Shown here in pieces: positions 5,162 to 51,230 of a stretch of 64,000 nt of DNA; position 1 is the first letter of the stretch, and every line of letters starts with the position of its first letter. The position numbers and the translations under genes were made by a program. This stretch comes from Styela clava. Lineage: Eukaryota. Below the pieces are notes generated by a model that had not been told where the DNA came from, did not search any database, and saw only the letters and a program-made list of their open reading frames with translations. The stretch spans positions 7,998,001 through 8,062,000 of the forward strand of contig NC_135251.1 in the NCBI RefSeq assembly GCF_964204865.1. Reading direction: 5' to 3'.

Positions 5162-6512
5162 ATGATGTCTTATCAAAATGTAATCGCAAAAATTAATAAT
5201 AACACTGAAAAGTGCACTGACTTCTATGACTTTGCTGAATCTCATGGATATTTTGAGAGAAAACTAAATGTGAACGTAACTCCTCAATTGGAGGAAATTG
5301 ATTTTTATGGAGGTGAAAGAATAATTGAATATGATTATGTACCAAAGTCATCTAAACGACCGAAGCATCTAGAATGGGAAAGAGAAAGCGGGATCAGAAA
5401 AGAGACTCAACTGGATGAATTGTTTGACAACTTCAAACATGGTCATGTCTGTTTTGTGGGGCCCCCTGGATCGGGAAAGACAACACTCATGAAAGCAACA
5501 TCCAGAGATGTCATGCATGGAAAATATTTTCATAGAATTATCAAGATGGTTTCATACATAGAATGCAAACAATTTATGAGAAACAGTAAAGTAACCGCAG
5601 CGGAACTAATATTTAACAATCTCACAAAAGAAGAAAGAAGTCAAGCAATAGACATTGCAAAAACTCACCCAGAGGAAGTTTTGTTTTTGCTCGATGCCTT
5701 GGATACTTTCCAATATACTGTTGATGGAGTTTATGAAGTCATCGGCTTAGATGAGCCTGCATATCCTGAAGTAATAATGTGGAATTTTCTCTCTGGAAAA
5801 TTATTTCCTGGCTGTCGCATTATATCGTCCAGTCGTGAACATTCCATCAGAAATTTTTGGGGAGAAATTCGACCAAACAAGGTCATTGCACTTGCTGGAT
5901 TAACAATGAAGTCAATCAAAGAAATCATTTCTGGATATGAAGGAGATGAAGAGGCCGAGAAAATAATGGAATTTCTCAAGATTGAAGCTCCATTACTCTT
6001 GTTTCTGTGCACTACACCAGTGATGCTTGTTTACACATTGATAGCATTGAAATTCAAATCTGACTTCAAACCAAACACCATGAGTGGTATTATGATTGTG
6101 GTCATGCAAAGCATCTTACGATCACCCCACACTCACCAAGAGATTACTATGGAAGTGTTGGGCAAATTAAAAGATCTATCATACATTGGGACAATAGAAC
6201 GCCGAGTTCTATTTACAGAAGATGATTTTCGTCAAGTTCATCTAAAACCAGAAGAAGCAACCGATCTTGCAATCCTGGCTCCTGGAGGAATATACCGTAA
6301 AGTTTTTCAAGGAATCCACCTTCTTTACTTTCAACATCAAACTTTTCAAGAAATGCTCACATCATTCTATATTCTTGGACTGGATTTAAAAACGTTCAGG
6401 GAGTTTGTGGATGAACATCTTCATACGGGTTACTTTGTTTTCGTCAGAAGAATGATCTGTGGATTTTTATTAAATACCAGAGTTTATAAAGCAGCAGGAA
6501 TTTTACTTGAAG
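5162..6512 (+). CDS. NLR exon 1: NACHT NTPase with helical and winged-helix domains
   Basis: Walker A GPPGSGKT, Walker B VLFLLDALD, sensor-1 IISSSR, LCTTP (GxP-type) motif and WHD motif YFQHQTFQEML. Donor GAAG/GTATTG at 6513. Confidence 0.93.
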
Positions 6513-9500
6513 GTATTGTGATGTTTATTGTTTAACTTGGATTAAAATTCAAGCTGGTGCCATTTTTTTTATTCAAATCCGAGATTAGTTAGATATTGTC
6601 ACTTCAATAGGTATTGTTAAGTCACTTCAAAGTTTGATATATTACATAAGAGACCTTGTTCATTGTTTATCATCTACTTTGAAATAGTTTGAATTTTTTC
6701 AGATGTGAATATTGGTTTGTTTGAATTAATAACTAAACAGTACAATTGCTTAGCAGTTAAAGTATTAAACTTTTTAAGTGTATTGGCATTGTAGGTTGCT
6801 CATTTCAAGAAACAGTAATCTTATATGTAGCTTAACAGCATGAGTTTGTACAGAGCATTGTTCGGAGCCACATTTATTAATGCTGTAATTCTTGGCAATA
6901 GGGGCAAAAGTTTAGATGTTGCTATTATGTTCTATTGCAAAACAAAAAGTAGCCAAGTCTTATTATGACACATCAAGCATTATTATTGCTCATTTTACAC
7001 TGGATTTGAACTAAAGCTTTAAGCTAGGGGGGAATCTGAAGTGCAGTGACAAATTATTATTACCCAATACATTGATAGACAATGGCTAACTAGATTAAAC
7101 CTTCCAATCACTAGTTTAAAAAAGATGAAAGTTGATGTTATTTATATGTCAACATTACTGAATGGTAACTCATTATTCACTCATACGCAGGTATCATCAG
7201 TATAAATATATTTTTATATTCCCACAGAAATTACGGATCTTGAAGAAAAACGAGATATTTTCAAGAAAAGTCTGCAATCACAACTCAAAAAAATATCAGG
7301 CGGATCAGATCTTCTGGAAGTTTTCACTGCAATGAACGAAGCCAAGGATGGAATGAGTGACATTGTCAAATCATCTCTTAATGAAATTAGCATGACTGGT
7401 CATCCTCTCTCCATCAGCGATATTCATGTCATTGGATCAGTAGTTTCTTACTGCACATCACTAACATTGGATTTCACTAGATGTGATCTCAAGTCAGCCT
7501 CACTTCAGACTCTCGCATCTGGATTAAAAGGATCAAATGCGAAGGTAGAATTTCTAATATTAAATTCTCAAAAAAAAATTCATGTTTATGTTTTTACCTT
7601 AAATAAGGCTTTAGACTAGTAGCGTATATTTTGAGAGTTACTACAATATAGTTGAATTTCACCATATATTAATTATATGTTGAATTCTATATCAAAATAT
7701 TTTGGTTTGAAAGTGTTTAATGAATTGTCACACACAGAAAGTTGTGGTGGACCTGGTTTTAAACCTGAAATCTGTGGTCCGTGGTACAAACGCAATTAAT
7801 ATAGGTATATTTCTTATTTGGTAAATGCTTACTGACTACATGGTATGTGCAAAACAACATGGAGAAGATTTTTTAGCATTAATTTCTTTATGTTGTTTTA
7901 TTGTGTCTTGTCTTTGAACAAGACTCCAGGCACTGATCTTTAGCGAACTATGATTTACCGACGGCTATCGCTAACTGGTAGAAACGATAAATGTAAAAAA
8001 AAAATGTCCTTGTCTCTTTGCGTCATATTTTCCAATTCCTAATTTTGCATAAAGCATGCCAACACCGTTTTTGTGAATTTAGAAACGTCGAACCAGATAA
8101 GTAGGATAGGTAAATAATGTATTTTATAGAAATTTCTCGCGATATTGGGAAGAAATATATATTATTTTGACCACGTAGAAATGCTTTTATTGCCGATTTA
8201 TTCATGTGCTAGTATCAGTGTTTTAACCCCAAGCTGAGTTACGTAAATACTCAACACTGAGTATTCAAGAGATTGCCAATTTGCAGAGCTTTTAATTATC
8301 ATTTTATATGAAAGTAACACCGACACGATCTAAAATTAAAGACATGAAAATGTCAACCATCCGCTTCACAAATATCGCATCCCGGGGTCAGTAATGTTAA
8401 TATTGTCCGCTTAGAATTGGGACCGTAATTTACAAACTGCGGTTCAAATCCTACACAGAAGATAAAAATGAGAATAAAATTAATTTGTGTAGTGAATGCA
8501 CTCCTTAATAGTTGTCTCTAACATATTCGCCGATGTGAACTAACAATTCTGTCCGACATATAAAAACCAAACTACGATATCGGCCGTTGCGTGAGAATTA
8601 ATATTTATATAAAAAAGTGATTTAATATAATTTAACAACATTAATTGGAATATCGGCCGCTGAAAAGATCGCAGTGATCAAAACTTTACTGCAGCTTTCG
8701 ATTATGAATAAATTATGAAATAAAAATCGCCGCATTGTTACGGAGTTTTCAGTCTTCAAGTAGAATCCGAAAAAACAAATACTTATTGTCACGGTGATTG
8801 TTTCGGTGGCCGTCATCCAAATTAATGTTTAAAATGACAATACTCATTATTCGGTGTTGGTTGAAAATATTCGAATATCTCTAGTAAAAAAATACGATTT
8901 TACCTGTCACTAATCACGGCGCATGTAAATAATCATTGAATGGCAATAAAAAATCAACTTAATTAACAATAAATTTCAAGTAATTGTTTCACATTTAATG
9001 CATTTGATCGGCGCTACATGCGAGCATGTTGTTTGTAAATATAAGCCATGATGACTCTTCTGCAGGGGTGGGTAACATACCGCCCTCGGGCCGCGTCATG
9101 CCCGCAACGAGATTTTGACCAGCGCGCTGACTGTTTTCAACCACACTCTGTAATGTGGTCCGACGCATCATTCATGAAAGTTGCCTATCACTCTACTCTC
9201 ACCGCACTGTCAGTGCAAGATGGTGAAATAAACAATTGCCCTAGTGAACAAACAATTGCGTTAGCACACTTGTTAAACAAACAATATAAGGTCAAAGCAG
9301 AGAGCGTTGTAAACATTCCCCACTACTGTTATTGGTTATATTTAGATTCTAAATATAAATAGATTTTAGATTAGGATTTTTTTAGATTTAGATTTTTTAT
9401 ATTAAGTTTAATTAACCATGGAATACCCCAAGAAACGTGAAGTTGACACAGAGAGGGGTCGAGCATGTAACAAAGATTGGATACCGAAGTATTTTGAAAT

Positions 9501-12500
9501 AGGACTTGCAAACTCACTAAAAAACACCTTAAGTCAAAGAGAGGCGGGTTACACGTAACTGTGGAATTTGCTGTGAACGATCATGCATTTCAGTTTATTA
9601 AATGCATTTTTACGTCGTCGTGAATAGCACTTTTGGTGTAATGTTTTAATTTCACCATAACCCCCTCTTGGGAAAATCCTGGCTATATCATTCAAATATA
9701 ACCAACTATATATTACACTTCCTATTAATATCAGATTTGCTATACTTGTTATATGATCATTTCGTTCAACCAGTATTAGGTTTGCTTAATATGTGTTCAT
9801 GGTTTAAACAATTTACATTCCTTTACCCTCTGGAATGTTTCATTGGAGTCCCGCTCCATCAAAAAGGGGTCTGTCCATGCTTAATTTGTTGATGATTTTA
9901 CCATTTTAATTTAATTTTAAAATATTTTTTCGTTCTTTGTCCAAGGTTTAAAATTTTGCCATTCTAATTGAATATTGAGTGGCATTCCATTTTCCACAAT
10001 CGGCCCAACAAGATTTTAAAACAGTTTAAATATGATCTTAAATTGTTCTTTCATTATAGATCATGAAGTTGTGGCTGAATAAAAACACAAACATGGGAGT
10101 TGAAAGTTTAACATCAGTTGGACAAATACTTTCCAATCAATCCTGTGTTGAAGAGTTGGGCCTTGGCAACTGTAACTTGTCATCAGATCAACTACAAGCT
10201 TTCAAATCCTCGATAGGCAATAGAACAACGGTGAGTTACAATGGTCAATCCATAGTGAACTTTTCTTGAATTTATTGTATAGCACAGTCTATGGGTCACC
10301 TGAAAATCTTTTTGGGTCGCTTGTTTTAGAACCAGAAATTATTTCCAGTAAATTTTATTGTTTTTTTCATATTTGGTATTGTAATGTTTCTCAATAGTAA
10401 TTTTACATGTGGAAGGTATCACAGCGTTAAAACTTACTAGCAGCTATAAATAGTAAATGGCAGCAGCCAATAAATAGTAAGTAAAAATAATTGTTTTATT
10501 TTAATCATTTAAATCTGTGGCCATAAAAGCACTACATGCAGTTTAGTGTGTGAGAATATCCTTGGATCGCTTGGTTTTTCAAAATTTATTTTTTTTTAAA
10601 AAATTTAGTCACTTGAAAAAAAAAGATTGGGAGCCACTAGTATAGCAATCCCTGTAATTTACAGTTACCTCTGTCATGCAAAATGCGGAGTCAAATAAAA
10701 AATTATTTCAGCTGATTTGGAGTCAAGTCAATTAACTCTAAATTAATTTTTTCATTTATTTGATGATTTCGGTAAGTAGGGAGATAACATCTCATAACTG
10801 GAATATAATTGAACTTTTAAAGAATAATTTTTGGGGAAAAAGACTAAACTTAGGAATTCGGTGTAGATTTTGGGGGTGCTAAAGTTACAGGCACTTGTGT
10901 TATGGTTTTTATTATTTATTCAATAGTGTAGTGTTTTACTTTCTGCTGAGTACAAACAACAATATCCTTGATGGTTGTCTCATATAATCTCTGGTGGGCA
11001 ATGTTGGTTGGTTAGCTGCAAGGGTTATACTCTTGAATATTTGTCATGCATGAAACATCACACAATTGATCATAAGCATAAAAATAGGGTACTTTGAAAT
11101 CTATCAACCTAAAGTAATAATACCTTGAAATAGGCCATGTTAATATCAAAGTAAATATTTCAATATTTTTGTTCTGTTTTATGAGTATTAATAAATTCAT
11201 AATTGCTCCATCATTCATTTTCATGCAGTTGTTAACATGGGATTCAACTTTTGTGAATTTACATATTTTAATTCTGATATGTCTAGTTTTTTCAGATTTT
11301 GTTTTCAAATTCCACGGTATTGGCTATGGAATATTAATGGTATATTTTTCATCAAAAACTACTTTCAGTTTGAAAATGTTCATAATTTTTTATTTCTCAC
11401 TCATTAAAGAATCATTATGGATTTCCTGATTCATCAATTATTCTTGTCTCTTTATAGCTCATGAAGTTGTACCTATATGGAAACACAAACATGGGTGTTG
11501 AAGGTTTATTATCAGTTGGACAAATACTTTCCAGTCAATCCTGTGTTGAAGAGTTGGGCCTTGCCCATTGTAACTTGTCATCGGATCAACTACAAGCTTT
11601 CAAATCTTCAATTGGAAATAAAACAAAGGTGAGTTACAATGATCAATTTATAGTAAACTTTTCTTGAATTTATTGTACAGTACATTCTAAGGGTCACCTG
11701 AAATTCTTTTTTTTTTTTATTTATTTTTTGCAACACAAATATTTTTTAATAAAGTTCACTGTATTTTATCTTGGTATAGTAGTGCTGCTCAATAGTTATT
11801 TTATATGTGGAAGGTATCATAGCGTTAAAACTTAGCAGCAGCCATTTTGTTAAAATAAAACCATGCCACAATTTCAAAAAATTGCTTTTGGCAAACAAGT
11901 GAAACTTTCTTCACTAGTGCAACTTTGAATTAATTTCTGTTGAAATAAATAGTATGTAAAAATGATTGTTTTATTTTAGTCATTTATCTTTGTGGCCATT
12001 AAAAGCACTTAATGCCGTTTAGTATATAAGCATATAATTGGATCGCGGGGTTTTACAAAATTAATTTTTCTGAAATATTTGGTCGCTTGTGGAGAGGGTG
12101 GGAGCCACTACCACAGCAAATCATGTAATTTATAGTTACAACTGCCATACAAAATGTGGAGTTATATAAAAACTATTTGAGCTGATCCAGAGTCGAGTCT
12201 AAATTTTTCATTTATTTAAAGATTTGGGTAAATAGTAAGGTAACATCTCACTACTGAAATATAATTGAAGTTTTGAAGAATAATTTCATGGAAAAATAAT
12301 TAGCAATTCGGTGTAGGTAGAGAGTTAAAACTACAGGATATTTTTATGAATGCTAATTCCGATATTCCAATAGTGTGATATTCGAAAACTTTATTCGGTT
12401 TGGCCATCCCTGGTCACTCTCATGCAACATTTTTATTTTTATACTGACGTAGTGTTCTACCTTCTGCTGAAAACAAACAACAATTTTCTTGATAGTTGTC

Positions 12501-15500
12501 TAATATAATCTCTGGTGGGCAATGTTGGTTGGTTAGCTGCCAAGTTCATACTCAACTATAATAACAGACACAGATTTGAATAATTTTTTCGTCATGCATT
12601 AAACATCGCACAATTAAACAAAAGCATAAAATAGGGTACTCCGAGTAATAAACTTGAAATAGCCTGTGCTGATAACAAAGTAAATATTTTAATATTTTGT
12701 TCCGTCTTGTGCATATTAATGATGCCGTAATGGCTCAATTGGTCTTGTGCAGTTGTTGACATTTGTTAACAAGGGATTCGGCTATTCTGCATTTACAGAT
12801 TTTATTTCTGATTATCTATTTTGTAGTTGGATATTGTTTTAACGAGACATCTGTAGAATATTACTAGTATATTTTGCATAAAAAACTACTTTTACTTTAA
12901 AAATGCTCATAATTTTTCATTTCTCACTCAGTGAAAAACCATTTATATCTTTCGAGGTTTATCAATAACTCTTGTCTTTTTATAGCTCATTAATTTGTGG
13001 CTGAGTGGAAACACAAACATGGGAGTTGAAGCTTTATCATCAGTTGGACGAATACTTTTCAATCAATCCTGTGTTGAAGCCTTGTACCTTGCCAACTGTA
13101 ACTTGTCATCAGATCAACTACAAGCTCTCAAATCATCGTTGGGCAGCACAGAGGTATAACACAACAATAATTTTGTTTAAAAGGTCGGAGGAAATTGGAT
13201 TGCACTGTGAAATTATGGAAAACTTCTGAAATTTTAAATTTATCTTTTATTACACCTTGTGTTCGATGATTTGAACTTGTGCAATCTGGAATGGAAACAC
13301 AGTCAAATCTAATGCTTCAGATGCTAGGTCATCACACTCATGCATGTAAATTTATGATTCTCATGCTATCCTATCATCTTCAAAAGCTGATGTCTGTTTC
13401 AAGTGTTTATAAAAATAGAGAAAAAATAGATTAGAATTTGGAACAGAAGGTAATGATCAATAATAATAATTCTAAAAGGTACTTATTTCTAACATTGAGG
13501 GGTTGGAAGACAAAAGCATTCCTGTTTTTGAAATTGTAATTTACCTATGTTGCTCTGAGTTTGAAATAATTTTACAATTTTGTTTATTGATTCGAATTGC
13601 TATCACGATATGAAACACAATCGATTTGACCACAAAAAATGTCACTTGACTAAAACATTGAAATTTTTTATATATTGATTCTCACTCGATAATAACTGCC
13701 AACCTCTGGCACCAGGCTATATTTGAAGTTACAAAAGCGTGTTAGCTTTCAAAATGTGGATTTTGACCAAGTTTCACCCAATTAAAAATGAATTTCACTA
13801 TGTTGTGTATTAATGCCAATTGCTACCACTTCATTAAATGCAATGTTTTTGACCTACAACCCCAAGGCCATCCAGAGTTGGGTCAGCATTTTATGACGTA
13901 TTACTGTTGTCAACTTTATTACCGGTATATAAAAACATTATAAGATGCAAAAGAATCACTTTCATAATTTGTATGAACTACCGTATTAGAATAATTAGAT
14001 GGTTACCAGTCTGAGCCACTCAAATTTCTGAATAGAAAAAACTTGAAGCACTATAATTATGCTTGATCAGGAATTAAAAATTTTTTAAAAATATTTTCAA
14101 TGAAACTTTTTCACAGATATAGCTGAGTTTTTGGTTCAATTGACATCGGCTTCATCACAATTTCACCCAATGTGATTTTTGTATTAGATGGAAAAAACAA
14201 AACCCGACTTTCAAATATTCTGTATTTTAAACTATATTGATGGATAACAATTTTTCTTCATCAGTGTTCGCTATTAGTGCACTTTTTTGCGAAAACTGCG
14301 AGACATTTTCTCTATTTTTTTTTTTACTTTCAAGGCACCTTCACACTCATAATTTTCTTAAAGTGAACACTGCTTTTAATACTGTATTGAAATTATGAAT
14401 ATCATATTATATAGCGGCCTACAATAAAGTAGGATTTTCCAGAGTCAACATTATTATTTGAAACTTAAGTCTCAAATGGCAAATATATTCAGATTTTTTT
14501 GTCTTATAGTGAGCAAAGGCAGGTTAAAACTTATTTTTACTTTTGAAATTTATACCCGCAAGTTTGACTGTTTTGATATCATAACAATTTATCAATATTT
14601 TTGTTCTGTTTTATTGATTTTATAATTGTGCAAGTATTCGTTCTTATGCAGTTATTAGCATGTGATTCAACTATTCTGAATTTACAGATTTTAATTTTTA
14701 TATGTCTAGTTTTGTAGTTCAGATTTTGTTTTCAAATTCAACGGTATTGTTCGTGGCAGTGGTTCCCGACCATTATGGCTTGTGGCCCCCTTCCAGCGGC
14801 TCGTAGAACTCATGGCTATCCTGTTCATCATTCCAAAAAACTTGGATGTGTTCGAGTGTATTATGTATTTTCGACCTTCTATGGAATGCAAAAACAGACC
14901 ACAGGCTAGAAAGTCAAACTTTGTACTATTGGAAAGAGAAACTTGCAGGCTTTTTCTTTGGCAGAAACCCAAATTTGGCAATGTTGCTTCCTTGTCAAAT
15001 CTAACTCGCTAGGCAGCCAAGGCACTGAATGTAAACGTCTTTTACATGGAAAAGATTTTTTTGCACAGTGGATTTGGAGTTTGGATGAACGTAATGATTT
15101 ATTGTTTATCACATATGAGCAACGCAGGCATTGTGCACATTGCTTCAGGGCCCCCGTTAAGAACCACTGGTCTATGGAATATTCATGGTTTATTTTGCAT
15201 CAAAATTACTTTCAGTTTGAGAATGTTCATAATTTTTTTCTTTCTAATCCCTCAATGCACCATATCTAAATTTCTGGGTTCATCAATTATTCTTCTCTCT
15301 TCATAGATTATGAAGTTGTACCTGAGTGGAAACACAAACATGGGTGTTGAGGGTTTATTATCAGTTGGACAAATACTTTCCAATCAATCCTGTGTTGAAG
15401 AGTTGAGCCTTGACAACTGTAACCTGTCATCAGATCAACTACAGGCTTTCAAATCATCCTTGGGCATCACAAAGGTATATCACAATAATAATCACATGAT

Positions 15501-18500
15501 TAACGTATTTTAAAAAGGTTGGAAGAAAATTTGATTTTGATTTTGTAACAGATTAAGTTTCACACTTTCATAGCCAAAATTGGATTACATGGTGAAATTA
15601 ATGAAAAACCTCTACAATTTTAAATTTATCTTCTTTAATAAATTTTCAGGCCCTCTCATTTATTTGAAAATTTCTTTGAAATATATTATAACCAATTCTT
15701 ATGACCAATCGGTTCTGTTGAGTCTTGTCCGATGATTGTGTGAAATACCTAAAATTGTCCTATATTGTACGTAAATTACATTAATTTTTTTTTTCGATAA
15801 ACTCCCAAGTTTATTCAATTTTGAAAACTTTTTATTACATCTTAACATCTTAAGTAAAATTTGGAACAGAAGGTAAACAGATTTTAAAGAATAAACGATA
15901 AGTGCTAATAAATCTAAAATGATATTTATTTCCAACAGTACAGGTTTTATTTGTTCAATAACCACATTTATTTAATTTTCACGTGGTCAAATGTGGGATG
16001 TCCACTTGTATAAGCTTAAGTCACAGCTTATTACATTTTCAGTCACCTAAATGCTATTAACACCATAAATCATTTGACATTATCTACAATGAAAAGAGTA
16101 ATTCTGATATCATAAATGGTCGCACTTTTCACTTGTTTGTTAGTTAATCCCAATGAGACATATTAGGCCTTTGAGACAATAATTATTCATGCCTTTTCAC
16201 TGCAAACCTTGTGCAAATTTAACAATTAGTCTTTTGTACAGAATTTATAAATAACCTTTCAAATCAACCCTTGCCTTCTGGAACTCGGCAAGTTTTTTGA
16301 GGTCACCAGAGTCTGATAACCAAATTATAATTTTGACTATGTTGCTCTTACTTTTGTTCAATGATTACGAATGCTAACGATTTGTGAAATACAATTGATT
16401 TGACCACAAGAAAAGTCAAACAACTAAAACATTGAATTTTGATAACTGTTGTTCCTCATTTGATGAAAACGCACAATTTCTGACACCAGGCTCTGTTTCA
16501 ATGTTACAATGCTTTTCTGTGTAATAAGAATAATATGGGTTTGGCAAAACTAGGACGAATATGACTTTTATGTATTTTATCCATGCCATATTGATTTTTG
16601 TATTTGTTTATTTCAACAGATTGATCAGTTGTATCTGGGTGAAGATCGTATTGCAAACAATGAAGATATTGTTGCAGTTGCAAATCTGCTTCCTAATGTT
16701 ACAGAGAGTTTGTGGTTGGGAAGATGGAAAATAGCTGATGAAGATAAAGAAATATTACAGAATCAATTGGATGAAATTGGATCGGAGGTTTGAAATTCTT
16801 TTTGGGATATACAAAATATAAAATATGGGTCAGACATAAATCAATAATTTGTGTAGAAACTGAAAGTCTAAATTGTTCACGCTGAACTGAACACTTTAAA
16901 GTCCACCAAAGTATATGTTATTTCCATTCGTGTCATTTCAATTCTTTAAAGCAATTACCAAAATATTATATCATTGTGGTCAATTTGATTGTGTTGTACA
17001 TTAATGTTTAATGTTTGCTTTATTGGACACGTTTATTGGCCATAACGATCGTTTCAAAATTTTGTTGTTATTGTTATTTGTCTCCGTCTCCATTTTTAAA
17101 AAATCGCTTTTCTCTTCGAATACTGGACCAATTGCTTTGATATTTTCAGTGGTTAAAGATAAAATTTTCCTCCAGAAGGGTATTACTTTTTTTTCGCTAT
17201 GACGTCATCAAAATTATTGCCACTGGGTGGCGCTACGTGTCCATATATTTGAGCATAGCTCTCTTGTTTTAATTATGTTCATTTGTGTTTTGATAAAAAG
17301 AACAATTTCATAGATTCATTTGTGTTTCTGTTTCGTCAAGCAAAGTCTAAATTTGAAATGAATTGTATTTACTAATTTTTTGCAGTAATTATCATTTTAT
17401 TGAATTACCAAGCGTGGACTGTCAATTTAGTGAGTTATCAAAGAAAGCAAATTTTAAAAGTTTCTCAATAAATGTTAATGAGTAAATGACTGGAATTCCA
17501 GCATTGTCGTTGAAACCCTTCAGTGCTAATTTTGTATACAATTTATTCATTATAGAAACTAGAAATTTGCTTGGATAGATTCACAAAACTCAAAAGTCGA
17601 AGGATATCAGCAGCTACAATCAAAGTTTTTTCTAAACAACATCCAACCACAACTTCAAAAACAGAATTTGGTAAGTTATGAATATTTTTTCAAATTGAAT
17701 GGTTCTATGGCACCAATATCGCTGCTTGATAACAAACATGGGTTTTACTTTGCGTCTCCCTTCACCGTGGGATGCCATTTTTATGTTTTTTTTTCCTAGT
17801 TCTCATTCCAATCAAGTGAATTTACATTTTAGTGAAAAATAAACCACTGGCTCACATGATCACTACATCATGAATTTCTGCCCAATTGTTTAATATTTCC
17901 ATAGTTATCATTATTATATTATTCTTGTCATCAAGTAATTTTCATCGTTCTCGGAATGCTTATTGAATATACTTGCTACTGAAGCTGGCATATTATTCAA
18001 CGCTGTCTTGCAACATGTTAAATTTTGTCATTCTCTTAACAGATTTGGTATTTTTATCGTGTTATTGTCTATTGTACATATTGCGGTATCAAACAAAATT
18101 TTTGCTGTGATTAAATATACCGTAAATCTAGAATATGCAAAATTAATTTTATTAAAGATATAAAATAATTGCTTCCAAGTAGTTACACTTGGCTGTCGGA
18201 GCATAGAGCTTATAGTTACAGAATCTTAAATTTTTCTGATAATCGCTCACTACTCTTTGTATTTGGTTTTTGCTTGAAAAAGCCACTCACAGCTGTTTTA
18301 GATAACCCGGCTTTGCTGCTACTCACTACAATTTTATGTTTAATTTTGTTTTTGAATGAAATGGCCAGAAATAATATTGAGGTCACAGCTTTTATTTAAA
18401 ATAAAATATCTATTTTTAGCTTTGCCTAAAATTGAAAATGTTTCATCTCAAAGAAGTGGATCCGACATTCTTTTGACTTGGAATGAAGTATCTGACGGCA

Positions 18501-21500
18501 ACGTACTATACAACGTAGAAATCTTCTGTGATGATGTGAAACTTGAAGGGACTCACACTACAGAGGTTCCTCAGTATAGAATGGAGTCACCTACACTTGG
18601 TAAAAAATATATTTTCCAAGTGTGGGCCAAAGATGAATTGGGAAACTCTAGCATCAAAACACAGTCAAAGAATGTTATCAAATGTAAGTTATGGCCATTA
18701 ATCATTAGGTAATGTAGCAACCTTATAATTCAAATAGTTACTTATTGATATCGATCAGTAAGTATGTTCATAGGTATTTGTCTGTCTGTCTGTTAGATCA
18801 TTTTCGTATGTTACACGATATCTCACGAAAACGAGGTTGAATCTTCTCCATTTTGCATGTGCATTTATCATATCTCGGACCAGAAGCCTATTGATTTTTG
18901 ATGAATCATGTCAAATAATCAGCGAGTTATTAGTTAATTAGTGATGGGACATGCAGTGTTGCAATTGAGTCAGAGCGAAGGATACAAGCCGCTAGATCAA
19001 TAAGTCGGCGGTCTCCGTGCGCTATCTCGTTTGTCCGTTAGACACTTTCGTATGTTACGCGATATCTCTCAAAAGGGATGTTGAATCTAGTCCAAATTTT
19101 GCATGTGCATTCATCATATCTCGGAACAATAGCATATTGATTTTGGATGGATTATGTCAGATAATTAGCGCGGTAATAATTAATTAGTGATGGGACACGT
19201 GGTGTTGCTATTGAATCAGAGCGAAACAATCAAAATCGCAGTTTCTGTTTTGGCGGATCCCTTAACCTTCGTCGCTGCGAACGATTGTGTGCGTAACATT
19301 GCCCTGTCTGCAATTGCGAGAATAATCATTGTGAAATCGTACTCCGTCAAAATTGTCAAGAAAAATATTGTACATGAGGAAGATCGATAAGTCGGCGGTC
19401 TCCAATCGCTATCTAGTTTATTGTTTTAATAAATAGTCAGTGAGTGTATCTGCATGGTGGCGGCCCATCATCATTATTAGAAAAATATTAGGCATTTTAT
19501 TTTTTAGACGACTTATCGGCATAAAATCAGTGGTTCAAAATGGCCTCACATTTTTTCGCAATGAAAATGGTTTACATCCATTGACCAAGGCACAGTATTT
19601 TTATTCTATCATTCTTGGTGGTTCAAGAATTGGTTACTGACATTCAACATTACTATGTCAAACTGTGATGTGAAATAATTATGCAGAAACTACTACTTTA
19701 CTGGCTCCTAAACACCACCCCTTTACCTTAATTGCAATACATGAAGGTATATTGTGCTCATATTGTGTATATTGGTCATACAATCAATCTAGATTTATGA
19801 GGCCAAATCTTTTCTTTATTCCTAAACATGGAAGTTGCTCAATACCAGATTGAACTGGGAAAAAACATAATTGAAAATTCTAAAACAATACACAAGGAAA
19901 TTACTCAACTCATGGTAACAAATATTTTGTCGCATTTCTAGTTGCTGAGCCTGCTTTGTCTAAGTACTCATTTCCTACTTTACATAACTTTGGAACAACC
20001 TGTTAAAATTCATTTTTTGTTGCATTATAAAACAAATCTATTTTTTAGTGGTGAACGTTGAAGTTGCCGGCGGATCCATGAGACTGAACGAATGCAAAGT
20101 CACGTTTCCTGGTGGAACTTTCAACAAACAAACAAAGGTCTGGATGTCGGTTGGAATTGACAATTCACTGTGCCCAGAAGGATACATTGGTATCACACCA
20201 GTTTTCGATATCAGTGCAGATTCCGAATTCCTCAAAGATGCGATCGTGCAAATCCAGTCATGGTGTGTCGGTCTAGAGAAAGACAAAATTGACATATTAC
20301 ATTTCTCAAGTAAAACTGATTGGAATATTATTAAACCTCGCCGAATCACTGGGGATAACAGCATAGAATTCCGATGCAGAAAGTTCAGCCCAGTTATGGC
20401 CTTCATCAGGTGGTTGCTGTTTGGAACAGTGGAGCTTCTTATGGAACACCGTCTTTATATTTTAAACAAAAACAAATTTCATTTTGCATTTTTCACATGT
20501 GGTGAGACTGTTCAGAACACTGTCAGACATTATTATAAAGACCTGGGTGCACAACTTGCTCCTTTTCATCTTCCTCAGATTCTCTTACAAATTGGAGACA
20601 GAGTTCGCATGAAACTCCAAATTGACCGCGGACCAGAAAATTTGCATTTCGATTTTCCTGATGGCCATACTTTCCTGGTAGACAAACAATTCCTAAGAAA
20701 GCAAAGAAATGAATACACGGTTCAGCTTTTCCCTGTCCGCGACCAATATCCCCAAAGTAACATCAGATACAAGATGGTTAAGGAAGGCAATGAACCGGAA
20801 ATTTGCAATCGTGATTTTGATTTCCCAGTGGAACGAATAGGTGAGTAATTCAGGGCTCTTGCTCTCGCCTCATGCAGTTTTACTATGTTGTTCAAGTTGT
20901 CATTCGACCACTCAACATGATGCAGGTATTCATTGTTAAAACGAGGCTTCCTGCCATAAAAAAAACTTTCTAGTTTGGCTTATTTTGTTTAGTTTCTAAT
21001 TCTGGAAACTTGTGTTGCCCAATCAACATTACTTTCGAAGTTGAAATAAAAATGAATATGATTCTAATGTGTATCTCATACTGTTTAGATATGCCAGGAC
21101 AACAAACTATCAATTTCTATGGAGATGTTCGTGTTGCAGGGAACATGAATATGAATGGCGACCGCCAACAAGCTTTACAAGATGTGAGTAAATGCAATAA
21201 ATACGTAAATAAATTATTTCTGAGAAACAGCTGGCAAAATTTCAATTTTAAACAAATCTAGTTCTATTCCTTCGTTATAATTGTTTGTGTTTTTCTTTAA
21301 AGCTATGTGTATGAAGTTATAATATTATTTTGAATAAGTTGTAATATTACCAAATTGTCCATTTTTTACACTTTCTCCTGTTATATGCACAAAATGATAA
21401 TATCACCATGAAAATAATCTAACAAAAATAAATTTATCAAATATAATATAAATAAATATATATAATATGAATATAAGCAGTGGTGGGATTCAGCCGGTTT

Positions 21501-21922
21501 GCACCGGTTGTTTAGAACCATCTCACAGAATTTTATAAGATCAGCGTACCGGTTAGCATTAATCAGTTTATTTGCTAAAAAATATGACTTTTTGAAACAG
21601 AACCGGCTGAAAAATATGACTTTTGTGATGGAACCGACCGACAAAAAATTTGAATCCCACCACTGAATATAAGATAATATACAACTCAATCTCATACTAT
21701 AAATATTCAATCATTTAATTTGACTAACAAAATATTATGCTGAAAGTGACAACTGTTTTTTATATTAAGGAACAAATCGAACAGAGAGAAGCAGAGCAGC
21801 AAAGACAGGCAGATGAAAACAGGGTCCGTGTTCCAGGATTGGCTCCCCAAATTCTATTCTTGTTCCTAGCTGTTTTTCTCCACTTTTTGTTGAGGTGGCT
21901 CACACCCGAAATAACCTTATAA
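5162..21922 (+). CDS. NLR-family receptor, NACHT-LRR-FN3-FIIND(ZU5-UPA)-RHIM-like-TM, ~1310 aa, 12 coding exons (5162-6512, 7228-7544, 10060-10230, 11458-11628, 12986-13153, 15307-15474, 16620-16787, 17556-17670, 18420-18683, 20049-20840, 21089-21183, 21770-21922)
   Basis: Every exon is flanked by AG/GT. Phases chain without a stop (1,0,0,0,0,0,0,1,1,1,0). Summed length is 3933 nt, or 1310 aa plus stop. An in-frame TGA at 5144-5146 lies upstream of ATG 5162. Joining all exons into one transcript is inferred from phase compatibility, not from RNA data. Confidence 0.8.
7228..7544 (+). CDS. NLR exon 2: HD2-LRR transition and first LRR
   Basis: Acceptor cccacag, phase 1 start. Encodes ...LSISDIHVIGSVVSYCTSLTLDFTRCDLKSASLQTLASGLK. 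Donor AAG/GTAGAA. Confidence 0.85.
10060..10230 (+). CDS. NLR LRR exon A (171 nt, two RI-like LRRs, phase 0-0)
   Basis: IMKLWLNKNTNMGVESLTSVGQILSNQSCVEELGLGNCNLSSDQLQAFKSSIGNRTT, flanked by ttatag and gtgagt. Confidence 0.9.
11458..11628 (+). CDS. NLR LRR exon B (171 nt, phase 0-0)
   Basis: LMKLYLYGNTNMGVEGLLSVGQILSSQSCVEELGLAHCNLSSDQLQAFKSSIGNKTK, flanked by ttatag and gtgagt. Confidence 0.9.
12986..13153 (+). CDS. NLR LRR exon C (168 nt, phase 0-0; the ORF track shows the wrong frame here)
   Basis: LINLWLSGNTNMGVEALSSVGRILFNQSCVEALYLANCNLSSDQLQALKSSLGSTE, flanked by ttatag and gtataa. Confidence 0.88.
14757..15169. mobile_element. hAT (Charlie-like) element inserted in the intron upstream of LRR exon D
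   Basis: Ends CAGTGGTTCCCGACC / GTTAAGAACCACTG. Absent from the paralogous intron (empty site ggtattggctatggaat near 11316). Degenerate TSD. Confidence 0.8.
15307..15474 (+). CDS. NLR LRR exon D (168 nt, phase 0-0)
   Basis: IMKLYLSGNTNMGVEGLLSVGQILSNQSCVEELSLDNCNLSSDQLQAFKSSLGITK, flanked by tcatag and gtatat. Confidence 0.9.
16620..16787 (+). CDS. NLR terminal/capping LRR exon (168 nt, phase 0-0)
   Basis: IDQLYLGEDRIANNEDIVAVANLLPNVTESLWLGRWKIADEDKEILQNQLDEIGSE, flanked by tcaacag and gtttga. Not in the ORF track. Confidence 0.8.
17556..17670 (+). CDS. NLR linker exon (basic, Thr/Ser-rich)
   Basis: KLEICLDRFTKLKSRRISAATIKVFSKQHPTTTSKTEF, flanked by ttatag and G/gtaagt. Phase 0 to 1 bridges the LRR and FN3 exons. 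Confidence 0.7.
18420..18683 (+). CDS. NLR fibronectin type III domain exon (phase 1-1)
   Basis: P..V.....SDILLTW......LYNVE......YRMESPTLGKKYIFQVWA....GNS shows the FN3 W, Y and L..GxxYxFxVxA pattern. Confidence 0.85.
18736..19420 (+). mobile_element. Two head-to-tail Helentron/DINE-1-like copies in the FN3-FIIND intron
   Basis: Same family as 262-575. Units are roughly 18736-19030 and 19031-19420, each ending taagtcggcggtctc... Confidence 0.7.
20049..20840 (+). CDS. NLR FIIND exon (ZU5 followed by UPA-like domain; phase 1-1)
   Basis: ZU5 signature GGSMRL..CKVTFPGG...ITPVFDI....F.K.A.VQI, then ILHF...KPRRI...KFSP, then about 150 aa of beta-rich sequence. Confidence 0.8.
21089..21183 (+). 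CDS. NLR mini-exon encoding a G/N/Q-rich RHIM/amyloid-like motif
   Basis: DMPGQQTINFYGDVRVAGNMNMNGDRQQALQD, flanked by tttag and gtgagt, phase 1 to 0. The exon is well supported; the motif call is inference. Confidence 0.7.
21478..21665. mobile_element. hAT MITE in the last NLR intron
   Basis: TIRs CAGTGGTGGGATTCA / TGAATCCCACCACTG with a perfect 8-bp TSD AATATAAG. Confidence 0.93.
21770..21922 (+). CDS. NLR last exon: short charged helix plus C-terminal hydrophobic (tail-anchor-like) segment
   Basis: EQIEQREAEQQRQADENRVRVPGLAPQILFLFLAVFLHFLLRWLTPEITL*, after acceptor tattaag. Confidence 0.75.
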   Translation, partial: EQIEQREAEQQRQADENRVRVPGLAPQILFLFLAVFLHFLLRWLTPEITL

Positions 21923-25836: not shown

Positions 25837-27393
25837 CAGTGGCGGCGCGTCAATAGGGCCAACCGGGGCAATGCCCCGGTTGTTTTTTCGGTATAATAAA
25901 AAATATTCGAAAAATACCTCAATATCGGTTGCACAGACTGTCTACACTAGCCATATTCTCCCGACATGGTTCATTTTTCGCTCGCAAAGCCTTCGCCGAA
26001 CGTCGTCGCGGCGACGCCGATTCTGCCCCGGTTGCTCATTGTATATCGTATTCTCTTTTTTATCTTCCACTCGCCGCGTTTGTCTCGTTTGTTTTCTGTT
26101 TCTTTTACTAAATCATCGGGGCCGATCGGGGCTAGCCCCGAAATTATGACGACATAATGCCGACGTTTCTTACAACAACGTGTTGACATATTCACGCATT
26201 CCTTCACGTTCGTTGGTTGCTTGAAGAGTTGATAGTTTCCTCGCCTTCGTTTTTCTCGCTTTTTTCTCCACAATATTCTATCACGTGGATGTATTATAAG
26301 GCTAATGGATGGAGCGTCTGTGCAGTCGTGTATTTCAGACTTCTGCGATGCTGTATCTCGTATCCGGGAAACAATAAAATACGACGACACATGGAGTGCT
26401 TCTTTACGTCGCTGGCAAACAACGCAGCGTTTGATTTTGTCTGCATAGGAATGCTGTGACATTCTGGTGAATCAAATAGGCGATCGTCTGCGCACTGAAC
26501 ACCTTGCCGCGTTCTCTTTGATGAACTCCAAAAATTTTTCAAAATTTGCACGTCAATTTCCCATCCATTTGTTGGCTACTGTCTCCAAATTTTACCCCAT
26601 GATGAACGTGGGTAAATTGGAAAATGAATTGCGATGTATATACACCAATCAAACTTTTTTGAACATCACATCAACTTGCGCGCTCTATGGGTTCCTCATA
26701 GATAACACTCTAGTAACTACCTTTGCGGCGTCTGCAAAATTTCTGGACATCATCTTGACGACGCCTATTTCTTCCGCCGACGCAGAGCGAACATTCAGCA
26801 CGCTGAAGCGTATTAAAACGTATCTCAGAAACACAATGAAGCAAGATAGATTAAATTCCTTGGCTGTTTTATCCATTCACAGAGACGTTATTTCTGAGAT
26901 GCATGACTTTAATCAGCGCGTTATTGAGCATTTTGCTTCCAAGAAACCGCGGCGTGTTGCATATATGTTCAAGCAGTAGAAGTCTAGCAGCATATATATA
27001 TATGAGTGAGCGACGCATGTCCTTATCTTTGCATTAAATTTCCTTTCTTCATAGTAACGTTTTAAACCTTATTTTAGGTTTTGTCTGCTTTCCCGAAGTT
27101 TCTGTTAATATGTCATTGTATTTATCTGGGTAAATATTGCCTTTCCTTTTGAAAGAGGTTTCAAAATAAACTATGTCCATATTTATTAATCCCTTGACTT
27201 GGACCGGTTTTAAAGACACTTTCTTATCGTTAAAAATTGTCTCTTTTGCCGATTGGTTGTTACCGATGGAATGGTTTTTATACTCATAAAATGATGGGAG
27301 AACTTACAGCGTTCATCCTGTCCCCGTAGATGGGGGTGACTTGGTCCCGCAGTAGCTTGCCCCGGTTGTCAAAATGACCACGCGCCGCCACTG
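25837..27393 (+). mobile_element. Internally deleted hAT DNA transposon (ZMYM1-like transposase type)
   Basis: TIRs CAGTGGCGGCGCGT / ACGCGCCGCCACTG, subterminal GCCCCGG repeats, imperfect flanking repeat ggc(c)aacgag. Confidence 0.9.
26440..26979 (+). pseudogene. hAT transposase C-terminal dimerisation domain remnant
   Basis: TPISSADAERTFSTLKRIKTYLRNTMKQDRLNSLAVLSIH. An in-frame TAG lies just upstream of ECCDILVNQ and no N-terminal transposase is present. Confidence 0.88.
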
Positions 27394-35413: not shown

Positions 35414-37033
35414 ATGGCTGATGAAGAAAATAAAGAAATTCCCGCTGCAGAGGAAGCCCCACCTGCACCCGCAGAGGAATCTGCTGAAAATGTTGAGCCT
35501 GCTGCTACAGATGAACCTGCAGCAGTCACTGAAGAAGCAGACACTCCACCAGCAGAAGGAGGGGAGGTAGAAGTCAAAGAAGAAAGGGAAATACCACAAG
35601 AACAGGAGGGCGAGAAAGTTGATACTCCAGAGGAAGGGGAGGAAAATCCAGCAGAAGTTGCTGAAGCCGCTGCTGAACAGGCTCCTGAAGGTACAGAGGA
35701 GGCTGCAGGGGATGCTGCACCTCAGGAGGAACACAAACAAGAAGGGGTAGAAGGTGAAGTAGAAAAGCCAGAAACTGAAGTACCACCTGAAGGTGAAGAA
35801 CCAGTAACAGAAACAAAACCTGAAGAGGAAACAGAAAAAACGGAAACACCCTTGCCTCAAAACGAGGATTTCGATGCTGGGGAAAAAGACGAAGCGACGC
35901 TTGATGTTACCGGTGAAGTTTTATCAAGAGAAGGAAGCCCACAACCCCCTTTGGAAGGACCTGAAGAAATTAGGCCAGACTCTCCGAAACGAGAGTCCGA
36001 GGAGCGAGGCGTCATCTTTGAAGAAGAAGAAGAGGAGGAAGAAATCCCGAGATTTAACAGAGAAGAACTGATCGAAAGATACAATAAAGCTTTACAAGAA
36101 CGAGAAATGTTGAATCAGAAAAATCACGCTCTACAAAACAAACTAGCGGAATATTTTAAACGTAAAAAGACAGAAGACAACCGACAAGAAGTTGATCGCA
36201 ATGTTACAGACCAAGAACAAAGATACATGAAATACATCAGTAATTTAGAAGAGCTAAGAAACCAAGAGACAGCAGAAAGAGAGTCGTACGATGAACAAAT
36301 AGAGGAAATGAAAGAACGTAAAGCTGTGAAACAGAAACTAGTCGAACAAGAATGGAATGAATACTCAAATTTCAAACGTTCTGTTGCTCTCGCTTCTGTA
36401 AACAGCCGAAGCGGTCGACCTTTGACCCAGAAAGAATTTGAAATTTACGAGATTAATGAGGTCAAAAAAGAAGCCGAAGTTTCTCAAGTTCGACTTGAGA
36501 ATATAAAGTTGCGGAATCGATTACGAAAACGAGAATTGCAGTTGAAGCAAAAAGAAGAACTAGCTGAAGGATTACATCTCATCGATTTTGAGCAGCTGAA
36601 AATCGAGAACCAAACTTACAATGAAAAAATTGAAGAGCGTAATGAGGAGCTTATGAAACTCAGAAAGAAGATAACAAGTACGGTACAAGTTTTGACACAT
36701 TTGAAAGAAAAACTACAATTTGTACAAGGAGAAAACCAGGTATCCAAACAAGAGCTAGCACATATTGAAGCAGAAGTTGCGGGGAAGCGTGACATACTCT
36801 CTCGTACAAAACAAGCGAGGGATGCATTACGTCATGATAATTCAAAATTACAACAAAAATGTGGTCTGCTTGGAAATCGACTTCTTCTCCGAGACTATGA
36901 AGAAGGCACAGACGAAATTGCCGATCTAAGTCACCGCCTTGATCAACTAAAGAGAACTCATGCAGAACTAACGCTTAGTATTAGCGGTGTTAAAAAGAAG
37001 ATCGAACAAGCGAGAGCACAGTCGCAAAATTAA
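35414..37033 (+). CDS. CCDC96: Coiled-coil domain-containing protein 96 (CFAP184), intronless CDS
   Basis: E/A/P-rich low-complexity N-terminus. Conserved C-terminal LAEYFKRKK, EQRY and EELAEGLHLIDFEQLKIENQTYNEKIEERNEELMKLRKK (DUF4201-type). Confidence 0.93.
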   Translation: MADEENKEIPAAEEAPPAPAEESAENVEPAATDEPAAVTEEADTPPAEGGEVEVKEEREIPQEQEGEKVDTPEEGEENPAEVAEAAAEQAPEGTEEAAGDAAPQEEHKQEGVEGEVEKPETEVPPEGEEPVTETKPEEETEKTETPLPQNEDFDAGEKDEATLDVTGEVLSREGSPQPPLEGPEEIRPDSPKRESEERGVIFEEEEEEEEIPRFNREELIERYNKALQEREMLNQKNHALQNKLAEYFKRKKTEDNRQEVDRNVTDQEQRYMKYISNLEELRNQETAERESYDEQIEEMKERKAVKQKLVEQEWNEYSNFKRSVALASVNSRSGRPLTQKEFEIYEINEVKKEAEVSQVRLENIKLRNRLRKRELQLKQKEELAEGLHLIDFEQLKIENQTYNEKIEERNEELMKLRKKITSTVQVLTHLKEKLQFVQGENQVSKQELAHIEAEVAGKRDILSRTKQARDALRHDNSKLQQKCGLLGNRLLLRDYEEGTDEIADLSHRLDQLKRTHAELTLSISGVKKKIEQARAQSQN

Positions 37034-50228: not shown

Positions 50229-51230
50229 TTACTTGTACTTTTTCTCGCAATCCCTCACCTTGTATTTCCTATTATTTTTTTTTGTAAGTAGTTTTGTCCA
50301 AATTTTGATTGCCCTATAAGCAATAATTTCGGGTATCCAACTTGCTATCCAAGCATGAAATGCATGGATGTAGTATCCGTTCGACAACCTGGATTTTCCT
50401 ACAGTTTTTAGAGAATGGCTTGCAAAATTTTCGGCATTCTCTACAATCTTCAAGTTATATCCTATCATTGGTTGTATACTTTGAACAATAATTTCATTCT
50501 TTTCGCACTCATAGCTCAAAGCTTGAGAAAAATGGTCGCCAAATCTCATTGATGTGGAATATAAGGCGCAAAAGGGTAAGACAAATTGTGAGGCAGCTGG
50601 TGAAATGTTTATAACAAGACCGGTTCCTCTCTTTATCATATTTGGTAACACCAGTTGATTGACATTCAACGGAAAAAAACAGTTGCAAGATATAAAATCC
50701 AAACTTCTTTTCGGCCGTTTTTTCCGATCTTTGGTATTTCCAAAGCCGTCGATTGACCGTTCGAATTCTTGCTCTAATCCGACATTGTTGACCACAATAC
50801 CAATTTCTAAATCTCGAATGGAATTTCTGATTGCGTCATAGGCTGATGACGTCATCGTTTCTCCGTCCATTACTTCACCTGTTTTTGTAAAGTCGACGAC
50901 AACATATCGCGCTTCGACACGGCATCCGCTTTCTATTTCCTTCGCAAGCTTTTGTAGCTTGTCTCGATGTTGACCAACCAACACTATACTCATTCCCATA
51001 TGAGCCAACTCCTTTGCAAAAGCTTTGCCGAGGCAATCCGTAGCATTTGTTACAAGAGCCCATCTTCCGAACCTGCGATAGTCCACCGCTGCACTAGTAA
51101 AATATATCACAAAATGCGTGTACAGATTAAAAACCGTTCTCGCGCTGACATAAATCAAGGCTAAAACCCCTGCGAAATATAACGCACTACTGGTTTCCAC
51201 CAAAATATTTATGACCGAACAGAGACCCAT
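50229..51230 (-). CDS. HSD17B12/HSDL1-like short-chain dehydrogenase (very-long-chain 3-oxoacyl-CoA reductase family), probably catalytically impaired
   Basis: N-terminal TM, G.WALVT.ATD..GKAFA.ELA..G, LEIGIVVNNVG, LVLPNM..RG.G.VINIS, FSQAL.YE and C-terminal KKxx. TGxxxGxG and YxxxK are degenerate. Confidence 0.85.
   Translation of the reverse strand: MGLCSVINILVETSSALYFAGVLALIYVSARTVFNLYTHFVIYFTSAAVDYRRFGRWALVTNATDCLGKAFAKELAHMGMSIVLVGQHRDKLQKLAKEIESGCRVEARYVVVDFTKTGEVMDGETMTSSAYDAIRNSIRDLEIGIVVNNVGLEQEFERSIDGFGNTKDRKKRPKRSLDFISCNCFFPLNVNQLVLPNMIKRGTGLVINISPAASQFVLPFCALYSTSMRFGDHFSQALSYECEKNEIIVQSIQPMIGYNLKIVENAENFASHSLKTVGKSRLSNGYYIHAFHAWIASWIPEIIAYRAIKIWTKLLTKKNNRKYKVRDCEKKYK

Follow-up and report, generated by a model that had tools for sequence, protein, structure and literature searches.

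Does an NLR gene of an invertebrate chordate encode a protein that cuts itself in the manner of human NLRP1, and is the resulting fragment held in check by DPP8/9? This question is raised by a locus of the tunicate Styela clava that lies in the window analyzed here, a stretch of 64,000 nucleotides on contig NC_135251.1 (positions 7,998,001 to 8,062,000 of the forward strand; assembly GCF_964204865.1). The RefSeq model at this locus, XP_077966327.1 (P0069; 1310 residues), is annotated as protein-coding and labeled "NACHT, LRR and PYD domains-containing protein 3-like." An initial annotation had proposed that this protein contains a FIIND-type autoproteolysis site, that it self-cleaves, and that the Ser-Pro neo-N-terminus may place the fragment under DPP8/9 control, extending that checkpoint well beyond vertebrates. 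Our analysis supports a FIIND-like ZU5-UPA module with a Phe-Ser junction at the equivalent position, for which self-cleavage is a reasonable prediction, but not the DPP8/9 step. The evolutionary distance was also overstated, since the host is a tunicate and tunicates are the sister group of vertebrates.

Nucleotides 20291-20410 of the window translate on the forward strand to DILHFSSKTDWNIIKPRRITGDNSIEFRCRKFSPVMAFIR. The residues and coordinates initially reported are exact (His at 20300-20302, F-S-P at 20384-20392, and a His-to-Ser spacing of 29), the approximate position F1077/S1078 and fragment size of ~26 kDa agree with the RefSeq numbering and with the 27.7 kDa computed from XP_077966327.1, and the human NLRP1 residues quoted for comparison (H1186, S1213, and P1214) were confirmed in the literature (PMC9700037). 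Cleavage before S1078 would yield a C-terminal fragment of 233 residues and an N-terminal fragment of 121 kDa. In the exon numbering used below, residue 1 is the codon at 20048, so that H1049, F1077, S1078, and P1079 correspond to His85, Phe113, Ser114, and Pro115. An F-S-P tripeptide alone is meaningless; the site stands above chance because, in a fold predicted with confidence, it is located where ZU5 meets UPA, and because it ranks high in conservation among paralogs.

To characterize the module, single exons or the database protein XP_077966327.1 were used as search queries. A HMMER search against 1.84 billion representative sequences returned 38 matches; all the named ones were from S. 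clava, and no vertebrate FIIND was reached. An alignment of 44 diverse copies of the exon was then the input for AlphaFold2, which provided a model of the exon with a predicted local distance difference test score (pLDDT) of 91.4 and a predicted template modeling score (pTM) of 0.84. This model matched the cytoplasmic domain of UNC5b (3g5b; Foldseek E 6.9e-10; VIA-align Z 19.2, root mean square deviation of 2.8 over 251 aligned residues), the rat NLRP1 FIIND in complex with DPP9 (7crw_A; E 5.4e-8, Z 18.0), CARD8 in complex with DPP9 (7jn7_B; E 1.6e-5, Z 17.0), and the ZU5-ZU5-UPA-DD segment of ankyrin-B (4d8o; E 4.8e-8, Z 16.5). The superpositions onto UNC5b, rat NLRP1, and CARD8 cover 236 to 251 residues. 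The UPA part also matched 7crv_D (VIA Z 10.8), and residues 115-257 of the model were aligned by VIA to residues 1214-1350 of the human NLRP1 C-terminal fragment (6x6a_G; Z 8.8). In the latter alignment P115 is paired with P1214, which places F113|S114 in register with human F1212|S1213. In the model, F113-S114 is found in a loop (residues 111-115) that connects strand 105-110, the last of ZU5, to strand 116-121, the first of UPA. There is, in addition, an indirect link to the Pfam ZU5 family, which is passed by 6 of the 44 family members as well as by P0029, P0020, and P0033, and in the ESM Atlas the exon lies nearest to clusters of ZU5/UPA sequences from echinoderms and sponges (0.94-0.96) as well as to chordate FIIND clusters (0.93). 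Taken together, the exon is clearly predicted to encode a ZU5-UPA fold of very divergent sequence, a structural counterpart of the FIIND of NLRP1 and CARD8 and of the ZU5-UPA of PIDD1 and UNC5. We also observed that the ZU5 half of the model (residues 1-123) superposes on the GAIN domains of CD97, BAI3, and CELSR1 with Z scores of 9.6 to 10.8, above the unrelated background. GAIN domains of adhesion G protein-coupled receptors are autoproteolytic, and the superposition hints at a shared autoproteolytic beta-sandwich.

At least 87 copies of the module exon are present in the S. clava genome. The alignment to a family hidden Markov model comprised 88 exon rows from the genome and 50 rows from databases, with 86 genomic copies informative at the site. 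A number of observations can be derived from these data. (i) The site Phe is present in 83 of the 86 copies, with Tyr in the other 3, and its column ranks 4th of 265 in conservation. (ii) The site Ser is present in 80 copies, the remainder having Thr (3 copies), Cys (2 copies), or Gly (1 copy), so that a nucleophile is kept in 85/86; this column ranks 8th of 265. Among the Ser codons, 72 are AGY and 8 are TCN, and the recurrent alternatives are TGT (Cys) and ACA/ACT (Thr). The latter are single-step intermediates between AGY and TCN that keep a nucleophile, and such a pattern suggests that the residue serves in chemistry and not in packing. (iii) A His is found at either of two positions, the distal one occupied in the window copy or a proximal one, of the type known from PIDD and Nup98, within HF[S/T/C]. 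The genomic rows have the distal His in 73 cases, the proximal one in 10, both in none, and neither in 5, and the distal His column ranks 41st of 265; the corresponding figures for the database rows are 30, 9, 0, and 11, resulting in 0/138 rows with both. This either/or pattern in the alignment is suggestive of a required base that may occupy either position. (iv) The Ka/Ks ratio (nonsynonymous to synonymous substitution rates) of the module exon is 0.21 to 0.67 in comparisons with 17 paralogs, corresponding to purifying selection. The Phe anchor, the Ser/Thr/Cys nucleophile, and a His are under strong purifying selection. The conservation of Phe-Ser-Pro among paralogs, a check set beforehand, was thus confirmed for the first two residues but not for Pro, which only 32/86 copies retain.

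In CARD8 and NLRP1, mutagenesis has shown that cleavage needs the Ser, a Phe that serves as a buried anchor, and a distal His located 27 residues upstream (PMC3210808), and the triad of NLRP1 consists of E1195, H1186, and S1213, with H1186 and S1213 being 4.4-4.7 A apart (PMC9700037). Since Phe, nucleophile, and His are constrained across about 90 paralogs and the F|S pair is located at the equivalent structural junction, self-cleavage at F1077|S1078, as predicted from the sequences and the model, is probable. In the mechanism that we propose, autoproteolysis would be constitutive and proceed by an N-to-O acyl shift between F1077 and S1078 with the assistance of H1049. The 121-kDa NACHT-LRR-ZU5 product and the 27.7-kDa UPA fragment would remain associated noncovalently via the inserted first UPA strand and, by analogy with NLRP1 and CARD8, destruction of the former would free the latter to act. 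Its output would be different from a CARD, consisting of a short G/N-rich beta-motif and a hydrophobic tail.

Several results weigh against self-cleavage, and some of them would be expected if the module were instead a noncleaving ZU5-UPA scaffold as in UNC5B and ankyrins, with Phe-Ser kept for folding or binding and the protein remaining a single chain. There is no acid at His+9 (Ser-18), the linear site of the modulating Glu (E1195 in NLRP1 and E279 in CARD8); residues 94-96 are Ile-Ile-Lys. No Glu equivalent was identified, and the acids that the family conserves lie elsewhere (D91, 85%; D103, 74%; E107, 83%). The window copy has N93, R98, and G102 (20324-20326, 20339-20341, and 20351-20353) at positions where 62 to 66% of the paralogs have Asp, Asp, and Glu, respectively, and this loss of three acids from the loop that separates the His from the cleavage site could lower the cleavage efficiency of this copy. 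The complementarity of the two His positions amounts to approximately 4 to 7 changes on the tree, and an independent-pairs test, which is underpowered with 3 supported pairs, gave p>=0.5. At the sequence level, exon 20049-20840 matched no Pfam family, even at E<=10; FIIND (PF13553), ZU5 (PF00791), and UPA were all unmatched, and the Pfam alignment suggested in the initial annotation thus failed for this exon. Likewise, neither the exon nor a profile of 44 sequences retrieved anything relevant from the PDB sequences. Furthermore, the top structural match, UNC5b, is not self-cleaving, and the Phe is known to act as a structural anchor (PMC3210808). What speaks for cleavage over a scaffold is that the anchor position of UNC5b itself is occupied by Leu instead of Phe (PMC3210808), that Phe is followed by Ser, Thr, or Cys in all but one of the informative copies, that passage from one Ser codon family to the other occurs only via nucleophilic intermediates, and that 83/88 genomic rows keep a His at one or the other position. 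On balance, we consider a noncleaving scaffold unlikely. It is extremely improbable that the window copy, as part of a birth-and-death array, is silent or in decay and carries an intact site of no consequence. Some copies of this large family do contain in-frame stops (L006, L032, L046, and L055), and the window copy departs from the consensus at the three acidic loop positions mentioned above; however, the window contains every exon of the 1310-residue model, free of stops and Ns, the Ka/Ks ratios given above apply to this copy, and RefSeq annotates the gene as protein-coding.

The proposal that, after self-cleavage, a Styela DPP8/9 binds the Ser-Pro neo-N-terminus in its active site and that the fragment is restrained as in human NLRP1 was based on the insertion of NLRP1 S1213-P1214 into DPP9 (PMC9700037). 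In its favor, the window copy possesses Ser-Pro, a motif resembling an X-Pro substrate, and the genome contains a complete DPP8/9-type gene at C1:23.59-23.62 Mb. This gene comprises a match to PF19520 (Dpp_8_9_N) at C1:23,614,937-23,615,239 with 42-45 bits (45.4 for one exon; cut-off 27) and, on the same strand, four exons matching DPPIV_N and three matching Peptidase_S9. Generic exon-wise scans of the genome with PF00930 and PF00326 detected only DPP4/FAP/DPP6/10-like loci, PREP, three APEH copies, and ACOT, and for DPP8/DPP9 in Ciona nothing was found in the literature. However, the residue that follows the Ser varies largely among the 86 copies (Pro, 32 copies; Leu, 29; Arg, 10; Asp, 5; Ile, 4; Ser, 3; Gly, 2; Lys, 1). 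The Pro column ranks 197th of 265, 54/86 copies have a residue other than Pro, and on the tree Pro was gained or lost at least 15 times, mostly by changes of the middle codon base (CCA/CTA/CGA). In humans, P1214R is an activating disease mutation that blocks insertion into the DPP9 active site (PMC9700037), and its counterpart, Arg, is the natural residue in 10 Styela copies. The fragment of CARD8 begins with Ser-Leu and stays out of the DPP9 active site, yet it is restrained by DPP9, whereas rodent NLRP1 begins with Ser-Pro but makes no specific active-site contacts, its Ser-Pro being disordered or not displaced (bioRxiv 10.1101/2021.01.13.426575). A Ser-Pro terminus therefore predicts little, because it is neither necessary (CARD8) nor sufficient (rodent NLRP1). 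DPP9 binding depends mainly on surfaces of ZU5 and UPA, and these share only 7-13% identity in the structural alignments made here. The case for DPP8/9 control is thus weak, as it was built on one Pro that the family does not conserve, and we judge this step to be very unlikely. To judge from the family sequences, P1079 is an incidental variant at a freely varying position and not evidence of a DPP8/9 checkpoint. As a separate observation on the APEH copies, C3:7,672,172-7,678,956 contains three tandem intronless open reading frames (ORFs) of ~720 residues that are closest to APEH (acylamino-acid-releasing enzyme; 7px8, E 1e-117); a triplicated single-exon APEH gene is unusual in an animal.

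The Styela protein can be compared with several known systems. NLRP1 of humans and rodents has the arrangement NACHT-LRR-FIIND-CARD, preceded in primates by an N-terminal PYD. NLRP1 and the Styela protein share the order of NACHT, LRR, ZU5-UPA, and a C-terminal output, the fold of the module, the Phe-Ser-Pro junction, and a distal His, located 29 residues upstream in Styela and 27 in NLRP1. They differ in that the Styela module does not match Pfam FIIND and is only 10-13% identical in the structure-based alignment, that no equivalent of the Glu was identified, that the Styela protein has neither an N-terminal PYD nor a C-terminal CARD but a tail composed of a G/N-rich motif and a hydrophobic segment, and that it belongs to a family of ~90 copies rather than being encoded by a single gene. 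CARD8 shares the ZU5-UPA fold and the x-F|S cleavage motif, and its Ser-Leu neo-N-terminus corresponds to the second most common Styela variant; in contrast to the Styela protein, it is without NACHT-LRR, its output is a CARD, and its regulation by DPP9 is documented. PIDD1 and UNC5CL are ZU5-UPA-Death proteins with autoproteolysis at HF|S and a proximal His. This arrangement is approached by the ten distant Styela copies that carry HF[S/T/C], by P0024, which ends in a Death domain, and by P0029 with its tandem ZU5, whereas the window gene has Lys before Phe-Ser, a distal His as in FIIND, and no Death domain. UNC5B and the ankyrins, which include the best overall superposition, are noncleaving scaffolds that are not fused to NACHT-LRR.

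At the same C-terminal place, the paralogs carry a variety of other segments, namely, a caspase domain (P0007, P0040, and P0064), Pkinase plus Ribonuc_2-5A (P0002), a Death domain (P0024), and acidic tails. If the site cleaves, the fragment released by the paralogs with a caspase or an RNase-L/IRE1-type kinase-RNase would be the executioner enzyme itself. Most family members, whatever effector follows, have a G/N-rich motif after the UPA (NFYGDVRVAGNMNMNG, FHGDFNVGGDVDMMGQGN, and LYGDFNVAGNSTLNI; members include P0001-P0006, P0013, and P0029), the sequence of which resembles amyloid or RHIM-type signaling motifs. Within the family, the distant member P0029 (1356 residues) is predicted to contain two tandem ZU5-like modules after the NACHT (735-987 and 1013-1312), as in PIDD1 and ankyrins, and the second of these lacks a His at both positions (G-F-S). 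Another observation concerns the genomic organization of the family. On contig C2, 39 exon copies are located between ~1.07 and 4.94 Mb, all on the minus strand and with a fairly regular spacing of ~100 kb over 3.9 Mb and with interleaving of copy types that are ~89%, 75%, 62%, and 48% identical. We are dealing here either with a very extensive tandem segmental array of NLR genes or with an assembly artifact.

XP_077966327.1 matches the exons in the window at 97-100% identity by tblastn, with no stops and no Ns. The features of the gene are listed in Table 1. In a Pfam search, the full protein matched only NACHT and other P-loop families, but no death-fold family, FIIND, ZU5, or UPA, and no death-fold domain was detected by Pfam in the N terminus encoded by the first coding exon. 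The four LRR-type exons are near-identical. The module exon is bounded by an acceptor AG at 20047-20048 and a donor GTGAGT at 20841-20846 and ends in phase 1, with G|AT across the junction encoding Asp.

Table 1. Features of the Styela clava NLR gene, with nucleotide positions in the window
Feature	Position	Strand	Description
Match blocks of XP_077966327.1	5162-6520, 7227-7586, 10060, 11458, 12986, 15310, 16617-16787, 17556-17669, 18416-18682, 20048-20839, 21085-21183, 21770-21919	+	tblastn
First coding exon	5162..6520	+	Short N terminus, then NACHT NTPase; RefSeq 1-453; PF05729, E 1.5e-20
Middle exons	7227..17669	+	7227-7586, then four LRR-type exons (10060, 11458, 12986, 15310), then 16617-16787 and 17556-17669; tblastn of P0069 and paralog proteins
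Exon preceding the ZU5-UPA module	18416..18682	+	RefSeq 876-964; putative beta-sandwich/FN3-type by appearance of the sequence
ZU5-UPA (FIIND-like) module	20049..20840	+	Whole in a single exon; RefSeq 965-1228
ZU5 subdomain	20049..20386	+	Exon residues 1-113, ending with Phe113 (F1077); ankyrin ZU5 aligns to model residues 1-121, Z ~12
His85 (H1049)	20300..20302	+	CAT; candidate general base; in predicted strand 81-86 (AlphaFold2); 29 residues before the Ser
Phe113-Ser114 (F1077|S1078)	20384..20389	+	TTC AGC; predicted scissile bond; in loop 111-115 (AlphaFold2)
Pro115 (P1079)	20390..20392	+	CCA; second residue of the predicted neo-N-terminus; variable in the family
UPA subdomain	20387..20840	+	Exon residues 114-264
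Mini-exon after UPA	21089..21183	+	G/N-rich beta-type motif NFYGDVRVAGNMNMNG, common to most family members
Last exon	21770..21922	+	Charged linker, hydrophobic C-terminal segment (putative tail anchor), stop codon

Elsewhere in the window, we noted neighboring long single ORFs for a remnant of a hAT transposase dimerization domain (26467-26979, forward strand), a CCDC96/113-type coiled-coil protein (35414-37033, forward strand), CEP104 (42552-45272, reverse strand; 906 residues, apparently in one exon), and a short-chain dehydrogenase (50229-51230, reverse strand).

According to reviews, NLRs with a FIIND occur only in mammals and fish (PMC11508797). Kaur et al. (2021) noted that immune-type proteins of invertebrates contain ZU5/FIIND fusions, for which they predicted autoproteolysis (PMC8195603), so that the concept of autoproteolytic ZU5/FIIND immune proteins in invertebrates is already known. 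In the literature, we found no paper on tunicate NACHT-LRR-ZU5-UPA proteins; the ZU5-UPA module of XP_077966327.1 is recognized by no domain database, and its RefSeq name is merely "NLRP3-like." A bolder reading, which we consider less likely than not, is that this NACHT-LRR family of ~90 copies in Styela uses a FIIND-like autoproteolytic latch in which the UPA fragment is wired directly to varied executioners and not to a caspase via a CARD. The executioners would then possibly be the G/N-rich amyloid-like motif plus membrane tail in the window gene and, in other members, a caspase, an RNase-L/IRE1-type kinase-RNase, or a Death domain. If this is true, sensing by "functional degradation" would be a modular strategy of prevertebrate chordates, and the FIIND-NLR architecture would be older than NLRP1 or would have arisen twice. 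If the site cleaves, the precut design of NLRP1 and CARD8, which fires upon destruction of the N-terminal part, would be present in the sister group of vertebrates, in an expanded family with non-CARD outputs that include direct caspase and kinase-RNase fusions. The family would offer a system for asking what role the UPA fragment plays in the absence of a CARD and which inflammasome features, such as the CARD and the DPP9 brake, came later. Furthermore, the natural variation among Pro, Leu, and Arg after the Ser would provide a ready series for studying whether engagement of DPP8/9 relies on that residue.

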